Shown: positions 8,788-8,933, numbered from the stretch's first letter. The stretch: DNA of 64,000 nt from Octopus bimaculoides (GCF_001194135.2 NC_068981.1:35611757-35675756), one strand, 5' to 3'. The notes: generated by a model not told the origin, from the letters alone. A program made the numbers and translations.

Positions 8788-8933
8788 TTATTGGAAGACT
8801 TGAGACACCATTGTGAAAATGGTGAATAACTGAGTCAGGATTATAAGAATGTATGACTTCAGGCCTGTCCTGATGGCGGAGCTGGGATTCGATCTTGGCA
8901 TACCATTTGAGGTTTGATACTGAGTTCCATTAA
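8788..8933 (-). CDS. Nrg: Exon 7: terminal coding exon, GPI-anchor-signal-like ([48 protein letters not shown])
   Basis: Very strong acceptor tatcttctctatttccctttcag. Phase 1 matches the upstream exons. Open to TAA at 8790-8788. Small residues + polar spacer + C-terminal hydrophobic stretch. Confidence 0.8.

Follow-up and report, generated by a model that had tools for sequence, protein, structure and literature searches.

The window analysed here, a stretch of 64,000 nucleotides of Octopus bimaculoides DNA, carries the 3′ half of a gene which is probably a short L1-derived paralog, found here only in molluscs, that ends in a predicted GPI-anchor signal. The terminal exon, at 8788–8933, is the genuine and already annotated last coding exon of this gene. 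By its sequence, the gene is an L1/neuroglian-derived paralog separate from the true octopus neuroglian; both the sequence and the exon are already public, and the public names conflate the gene with neuroglian.

The Gene and its Terminal Exon

Upstream of the terminal exon (T), five exons (A to E) lie on the minus strand, with canonical AG/GT boundaries and all in phase 1-1 (Table 1). Spliced in the order A-B-C-D-E-T they amount to 975 nt, i.e., 324 codons, and the 324-aa translation is 100% identical to residues 318–641 of the RefSeq protein XP_052822111.1 (“neuroglian”, Octopus bimaculoides, 641 aa). The 2015 annotation also contains a fragment, UniRef A0A0L8G5N5, with an identical C-terminal peptide. 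Exon A gives a partial Pfam fn3 match and the joined exons D and E a full one (E=1e-11); furthermore, in a tblastn search residues 578–628 of the Haliotis homolog match 18553–18401, within which most of exon E lies, with E=1e-11.

Table 1. Features located in the window, with their strand where one was assigned.
Feature	Position	Strand	Remarks
Exon A	53711–53954	−	second half of FN3-3, ending ...HTPEG; AG/GT; residues 318–398 of XP_052822111.1
Exon B	51739–51861	−	first half of FN3-4; AG/GT; cuttlefish transcript 1539–1661 aligns to 51861–51739
Exon C	50535–50720	−	second half of FN3-4; AG/GT; Pfam fn3 match
Exon D	24888–25001	−	first half of FN3-5; AG/GT
Exon E	18391–18552	−	second half of FN3-5, ending ...VLEVQTAFQ; donor CAAG/gtaggt
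Exon T	8788–8933	−	phase 1; AG acceptor, TAA stop, conservation, public models
Candidate omega/omega+1/omega+2, S611-S612-A613	8875–8883	−	rule-based scan; 30 residues from C-terminus
Spacer IRTGLKS	8854–8874	−	7 polar residues, following S611-S612-A613
C-terminal hydrophobic stretch	8791–8853	−	21 residues; ends the protein, no residues after it
Candidate polyadenylation signal AATAAA	8496–8501	−	first after the stop, 286 nt downstream; pattern scan only
His/Arg-rich insert	~53832–53873	−	14 residues, FN3-3 loop in exon A
Interspersed repeat copies	12329–12538, 26137–26356, 26551–26861, 48026–48153, 48609–48889, 62384–62555
ORF fragment	62712–62831	−	no Pfam match at this length

On the minus strand, exon T is preceded by a strong acceptor, made of a polypyrimidine tract and AG (cttctctatttccctttcag/TT), and opens at 8933 in a phase compatible with the donor at 18391. 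Its translation, (V) plus 47 residues, includes a stalk, in which an NGT sequon and a conserved aromatic motif occur; after it come a cluster of small residues, a polar spacer and a hydrophobic tail, and TAA at 8790–8788 closes the frame. Neither a plus-strand ORF rivalling exon T nor any tRNA or Rfam match was found in the window.

Most of the gene structure proposed in a preliminary description, made from the sequence alone, is borne out by these models: the peptide that it quoted is present at 8788–8933 (minus strand, phase 1), its “TPEG” junction is the real end of exon A at 53711, and a direct junction between 18391 and 8933, with agreeing phases, is already contained in two public gene models. 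Another junction, placed at 14440, has to be abandoned. It would correspond to a 27-nt micro-exon (14414–14440) that is in frame and bounded by AG/GT, but neither of the public octopus models nor any homolog contains it, and it was rejected. An ORF containing “YTCRVAN” (60169–60405), considered as an upstream exon, gave no Pfam match and was likewise rejected. No exons for residues 1–317 were recovered by tblastn in the 54–64 kb part of the window, and these residues are encoded outside it.

Microsatellites occur in the AT-rich eukaryotic DNA of the window, which is also interrupted by ten N-gaps (4860–5098, 6009–6143, 10294–10910, 11573–12240, 16390–16434, 19318–19571, 42948–43094, 46410–46654, 51586–51595 and 56447–56567), at least four of which lie between exons E and T or downstream of T and could in principle hide small exons. 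The public models have peculiarities of their own. XP_052822111.1 begins MPNSLELKKFEIKWKHND..., lacking the signal peptide and the first Ig half that are found in the cuttlefish and other orthologs, and is probably N-terminally incomplete; its product name duplicates that of the true neuroglian, XP_052824013.1. In another 2015 model, UniRef A0A0L8G641, exon C is joined to a spurious last exon at ~39101–39200 (minus strand), which is an annotation artefact translated from a (CA)n microsatellite. This fragment, without the FN3-5 and tail exons, is the representative of the 90% cluster holding the octopus proteins; a protein search with FN3-5 plus tail gave no match, which reflects the masking of the RefSeq protein by this representative and not an absence.

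A Short Family in Molluscs

When the spliced peptide, and after it a two-sequence profile, served as query, some 25 molluscan proteins of 520–720 aa were recovered, most of them auto-named “neuroglian-like”; cluster look-ups added isoforms and species and bring the proteins with this architecture and tail to more than 25, from cephalopods, gastropods and bivalves. The genera represented include Sepia, Octopus, Haliotis, Patella, Lottia, Gigantopelta, Pomacea, Babylonia, Nucella, Biomphalaria, Elysia, Candidula, Crassostrea, Saccostrea, Dreissena, Mya, Sinanodonta, Potamilus and Solemya. In the alignment, the family architecture consists of a putative signal peptide, a single Ig domain, FN3-1 to FN3-4, in some isoforms FN3-5, then a short stalk and a hydrophobic C-terminus that ends in VFH, VFQ or FFH. 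The single Ig aligns to Ig6 of contactin-2 and neurofascin, and the octopus protein XP_052822111.1 has, by Pfam, five fn3 domains, one partial Ig and no Bravo_FIGEY. The six N-terminal Ig domains of the canonical proteins are absent: the full-length ORFs of cuttlefish, Haliotis, Crassostrea and others begin with a putative signal peptide and then one Ig. The signal peptides were recognised by eye in orthologs such as these three (MVFTVDLLVILICIGAGIPTVTAY in the cuttlefish), the octopus 5′ exons being outside the window.

When 1.84 billion representatives were searched exhaustively with the profile, the best matches included no non-molluscan member of the short family; the closest non-molluscan protein identified was the canonical Lingula neuroglian. 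Regarding novelty, the exon is already present in RefSeq and in the 2015 annotation, so that the exon itself is not new. The open literature, outside which most subscription journals lie, yielded no account of a molluscan neuroglian of short or GPI type, and within that scope the short family and its likely anchoring seem undescribed.

A Pomacea relative or paralog of the short family has a true TM segment and a 25-residue tail, so that anchoring is not uniform in the wider group, and Haliotis asinina XP_067683005.1 (1259 aa), a six-Ig neuroglian-like isoform, has a hydrophobic C-terminus without FIGQY. The anchoring mode seems, from these sequences, to be evolutionarily labile among molluscan L1-type genes.

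Affinity to L1 and the Identity of the Gene

The matches of the exhaustive search were rescored by their best single envelope, the ranking by summed score having been dominated by titin-like giants. On this scale the members of the short family reach 600–990 bits, and FIGQY-bearing neuroglians and L1s (~1200–1300 aa) align through Ig6-FN4 with 300–450 bits over profile positions ~27–540. Human contactin-2 (PDB) aligns through Ig6-FN3 with 177.9 bits (positions 23–376), sidekicks score 120–180 bits, and the Drosophila neuroglian FN1-2 structure (1CFB) scores 176.6 bits over 204 positions. Expressed per position, the FIGQY-bearing neuroglians give 0.6–0.87 bits vs 0.50 for human contactin-2. In the PDB search, exon A alone was uninformative and FN3-5 gave only generic FN3 matches. 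A neighbor-joining (distance) tree was built from 349 profile-aligned columns of 42 taxa, with human contactin-2 as the sole contactin and 200 bootstraps. The short family is monophyletic in 200/200 replicates, and in 161/200 it joins the L1-type proteins in a group that leaves out contactin-2 and sidekicks. Both the scores and the tree uphold the earlier assignment of the FN3 array, which by sequence is of the L1/neuroglian type.

Two other identities for the gene must be considered. The canonical O. bimaculoides neuroglian, XP_052824013.1, is a protein of 1230 aa. It has several Ig domains, a TM segment (IAMMVAIALLILILIIVCI) that AKRNREAKYDV directly follows, the sequence FNEDGSFIGQYG, and a Bravo_FIGEY match at 55.7 bits. 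The RefSeq product name “neuroglian” and the L1-type FN3 domains would agree with the proposal that our gene is a GPI-linked splice isoform of this one. Nevertheless, XP_052824013.1 is recorded on a 127.5-Mb sequence and XP_052822111.1 on a 199.9-Mb sequence, their FN3 sequences differ, the short family forms a clade of its own, and in its full-length orthologs the signal peptide directly precedes the single Ig; a separate gene with different FN3s thus excludes the isoform for all practical purposes. It is also very unlikely that the gene would be the octopus contactin ortholog or a truncated contactin. The isoform with four FN3 domains and a GPI-type tail does resemble the C-terminal half of a contactin, and contactin-2 does align through its Ig6-FN3 part, but there is only one Ig, the FIGQY-bearing neuroglians score far higher than contactin-2, and no replicate (0/200) places the short family with human contactin-2, the single vertebrate contactin in this distance tree. 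The wording “contactin-like L1 paralog uncoupled from ankyrin”, used in the preliminary description, is therefore half retained: the part on an L1 paralog without a link to ankyrin largely holds, with the addition that Ig1-5 are lost too, and “contactin-like” is to be dropped.

An Optional Fifth FN3 Domain

Exons D and E constitute a cassette of in-frame, phase 1-1 exons coding for FN3-5. The cassette is present in XP_052822111.1 and in long isoforms of Haliotis, Dreissena and Mya, and absent from the cuttlefish transcripts and from Haliotis X2/X3. The Haliotis isoforms X1 (667 aa) vs X2/X3 (572/570 aa) differ only by FN3-5, with an identical tail, and the same holds for two isoforms of a Logan-transcript cluster (682 vs 594 aa), which have one and the same tail.

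The Logan contig SRR25114245 (2064 nt) contains a complete 639-aa ORF, whose 90% cluster includes a fragment from Acanthosepion (Sepia) pharaonis. This cuttlefish transcript aligns to the window in four blocks, namely exons A, B, C and T. Its positions 1286–1538 align exactly to 53954–53711, exon B follows contiguously with an exact A/B boundary, positions 1654–1833 align to 50727–50549 (exon C, with a few bases of overhang), and positions 1850–1906 align to 8931–8875, beginning 2 nt inside exon T, with 74.6% nucleotide identity. In the cuttlefish mRNA, exon C is hence spliced straight to exon T and FN3-5 is skipped. By analogy with the cuttlefish and other molluscs, an octopus isoform with four FN3 domains would join the donor of exon C directly to T.

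The C-Terminal Tail

A classical GPI-attachment signal combines an N-terminal signal peptide with a small-residue cluster and a weakly hydrophobic C-terminal peptide. In the rule-based check the octopus tail displays the anatomy that had been proposed for it: small residues at omega and omega+2 (S-S-A), a polar spacer within the usual 5–10 residues (seven here) and a terminal hydrophobic stretch. In the cuttlefish, N-S-A is aligned with octopus S611-S612-A613, and most family members carry small-residue triads 20–35 residues from the end, according to a rule-based scan which is crude, since two family members fail it and ~1% of the window ORFs pass. The best 19-residue Kyte-Doolittle (KD) window of the octopus tail is 2.01, with one residue after it; in 26 family members the corresponding value is 1.81±0.24, with 0–9 trailing residues. 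The TM segments of 12 FIGQY-bearing relatives have a KD of 3.49±0.25 and are followed by the basic stop-transfer sequence KRNRGxKY.

As the preliminary description held, the product has no TM segment, no FIGQY tail and no basic cytoplasmic segment. Bravo_FIGEY (Pfam PF13882) has no match in XP_052822111.1 or in the cuttlefish ORF, the L1 cytoplasmic motifs GGKY, FIGQY, SDDS and others gave nothing meaningful in the six frames of the window, and neither the 8.8 kb downstream of exon T nor the rest of the window showed a recognisable TM or cytoplasmic exon. A choice between TM and GPI exons within one gene was not encountered in the window, beyond which further exons may lie, and all the listed ortholog isoforms have the same tail. 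Judged by its sequence, the tail resembles a GPI signal rather than a TM anchor, and GPI anchoring of the short neuroglian paralog appears likely on these grounds.

The C-terminal VF[HQ] and the aromatic stalk motif [FY]Y[RQ] of exon T are conserved from cephalopods to protobranch bivalves. This conservation is unexpected, and unexplained, if the tail is a GPI signal that is cleaved and discarded.

How far could such a tail arise by chance, or serve another purpose? A GPI-like ORF was defined by last 20 residues that are hydrophobic and uncharged, together with a small-residue triad 20–35 residues from the end, and of the 621 ORFs in the AT-rich window that are 40 aa or longer, 7 (~1%) satisfy the rule, so that composition alone gives exon T no significance. 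On that basis exon T might be taken for a fortuitous reading frame in AT-rich intron DNA, or for an error of annotation. However, a profile HMM of the last 55 residues of 17 non-octopus molluscan homologs, searched against 2045 six-frame ORFs of the window, has as its top match the ORF 8791–8979 (minus strand, E=0.0027; runner-up 0.22), with an alignment extending to the last profile position and to the stop of the ORF. The tail, recovered both by this HMM and by the cuttlefish transcript, is thus conserved in related species, and it is this conservation across molluscs that makes exon T more than chance although composition alone is insignificant. The cross-phylum homology, together with the two independent gene models, the right phase and the strong acceptor, leaves the artefact hardly any credit. 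It is a more serious alternative, if still an unlikely one, that the hydrophobic C-terminus remains uncleaved and spans the membrane as a type I anchor with a cytoplasmic stub of 1–3 residues. The conservation of VF[HQ] and the hydrophobic stretch across Mollusca suggests that the peptide itself matters, the octopus stretch has ~20 residues with a KD of 2.01, and the Pomacea relative has a real TM segment; yet the family tails are much less hydrophobic than the neuroglian TM (1.81 vs 3.49), in many members the stretch is broken by R, K, N and Q, no basic stop-transfer flank follows them, and the small-residue clusters lie at GPI-typical distances. Lastly, the product could be mainly secreted or shed, the tail being a transient ER-retention or processing signal, to which we attach only a slight probability. 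A “neuroglian isoform” was found in the skin-mucus proteome of Octopus vulgaris, where either gene may be its source (PMC11431876), and the His/Arg-rich FN3-3 loop sits where proteases cut L1 (PMC2175144). Nothing direct argues against secretion, and shedding is compatible with prior GPI anchoring, being more an addition to it than a rival.

Comparison With Known Systems

The Ig6-FN3(1-5) module of L1 and Drosophila neuroglian is homologous to that of the octopus paralog and gives the best profile scores. The motifs RGxFKGYKxxYW, TPEGxPxPV and PNGxLxGYxIxY are common to both, and L1 has a basic loop insert at the same place of FN3-3. Unlike L1 and neuroglian, the paralog, encoded by a separate gene, has no Ig1-5 (and hence no horseshoe), no TM and no Bravo_FIGEY/FIGQY ankyrin-binding tail, and ends in a weakly hydrophobic C-terminal signal. 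Another lineage-specific, truncated L1-type derivative in which the cytoplasmic domain was lost is hemolin, which is a soluble and secreted lepidopteran Ig1-4 derivative related to neuroglian that keeps the N-terminal horseshoe. The short molluscan family, in contrast, keeps the membrane-proximal Ig6-FN3 part and is, by prediction, tethered to the membrane.

Contactins, with six Ig and four FN3 domains, are GPI-anchored co-receptors that form the sister IgSF group to L1 (PMC10084454). The octopus paralog resembles them in having four FN3 domains beside a GPI anchor (here a predicted one) and in being uncoupled from the cytoskeleton, and differs in that contactins have their six Ig with a horseshoe whereas the short family has one Ig and 4–5 FN3, FN3-5 being optional. 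A molluscan precedent for GPI linkage exists in Aplysia apCAM, which has GPI-linked and TM isoforms (PMC2132711). NCAM-120, apCAM and Fasciclin II are, like the paralog, IgSF adhesion molecules whose ectodomain is GPI-tethered (in the paralog, by prediction). In those molecules a GPI exon alternates with TM exons and the ectodomain has 5 Ig and 2 FN3, whereas the paralog is of the L1 type and no TM alternative to its tail was found in the window or among the ortholog isoforms. No new category is created, since IgSF adhesion molecules on a GPI anchor and truncated, lineage-specific derivatives of L1 both have known examples.

Possible Mode of Action and Significance

A signal peptide would take the paralog into the ER, a step drawn from the orthologs because the octopus model probably lacks its N-terminal part and the window does not reach the 5′ exons. 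The GPI transamidase would then cleave at or near S611 and attach a GPI anchor, so that the ectodomain would sit in the outer leaflet, unconnected to ankyrin or the cytoskeleton on the cytoplasmic side. The Ig1-4 horseshoe is the mediator of L1/contactin homophilic binding (PMC3406286, PMC10084454), and because the paralog lacks it, the protein would act through its FN3 array, most likely as a cis co-receptor or a heterophilic ligand. Inclusion of FN3-5 would set the reach from the membrane, i.e., the stalk length, and the protein could be released by lipase cleavage of the GPI anchor or by proteolysis.

The public name “neuroglian” implies an ankyrin-coupled, six-Ig receptor, and this product lacks both the homophilic head and the cytoskeletal link; transcriptomic or proteomic studies of cephalopods and other molluscs that use “neuroglian” or “neuroglian-like” as markers (e.g., PMC9795677, PMC11431876) may therefore mix two very different molecules. 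The family constitutes a natural case, in cephalopods, gastropods and bivalves, of an L1-type gene cut to its FN3 stalk on a predicted lipid anchor, and so gives access to the role that the FN3 region of L1-family proteins has by itself.

A broader scheme, which we regard as conceivable but rather improbable, is that of a phylum-wide class of L1-derived Ig6-FN3 stalks on a lipid anchor, with the FN3 stalk as the functional unit. Such stalks might be, for instance, cis partners of canonical neuroglian, contactin or neurexin-IV-type complexes. The strict conservation of VF[HQ] would then point to an unusual fate of the tail, for example as an anchor that is kept or as a dedicated signal for sorting or processing, and through the His/Arg loop of FN3-3, peculiar to cephalopods, the protein would gain regulated cleavage or a sensitivity to metal or pH.

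Other Features of the Locus

The His/Arg-rich insert in the FN3-3 loop is common to octopus and cuttlefish (GGGHRHHHRAHHHGQE), and the gastropod and bivalve orthologs lack it, making it specific to cephalopods. The canonical octopus neuroglian carries a basic/dibasic insert (NRRSTRRSRHRRTSS) in the same FN3-3 loop, as other L1s do, and in L1 a plasmin-sensitive site lies in this loop (PMC2175144). The His/Arg-rich loop could, as far as its sequence goes, be a cleavage site or a metal- or pH-sensitive loop.

The window also contains an interspersed repeat of ~200–300 bp, with at least six copies in both orientations at 72–87% identity, all of them intronic or flanking. It is probably a SINE-like element; neither a tRNA-like part nor an Rfam match was found in it. 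Near the end of the window lies an ORF fragment, VKRIFYEACVQTAMLHGSETWALNTEDMQRLEKDEANMLH, which we take to resemble the C-terminal region of LINE-type reverse transcriptases.
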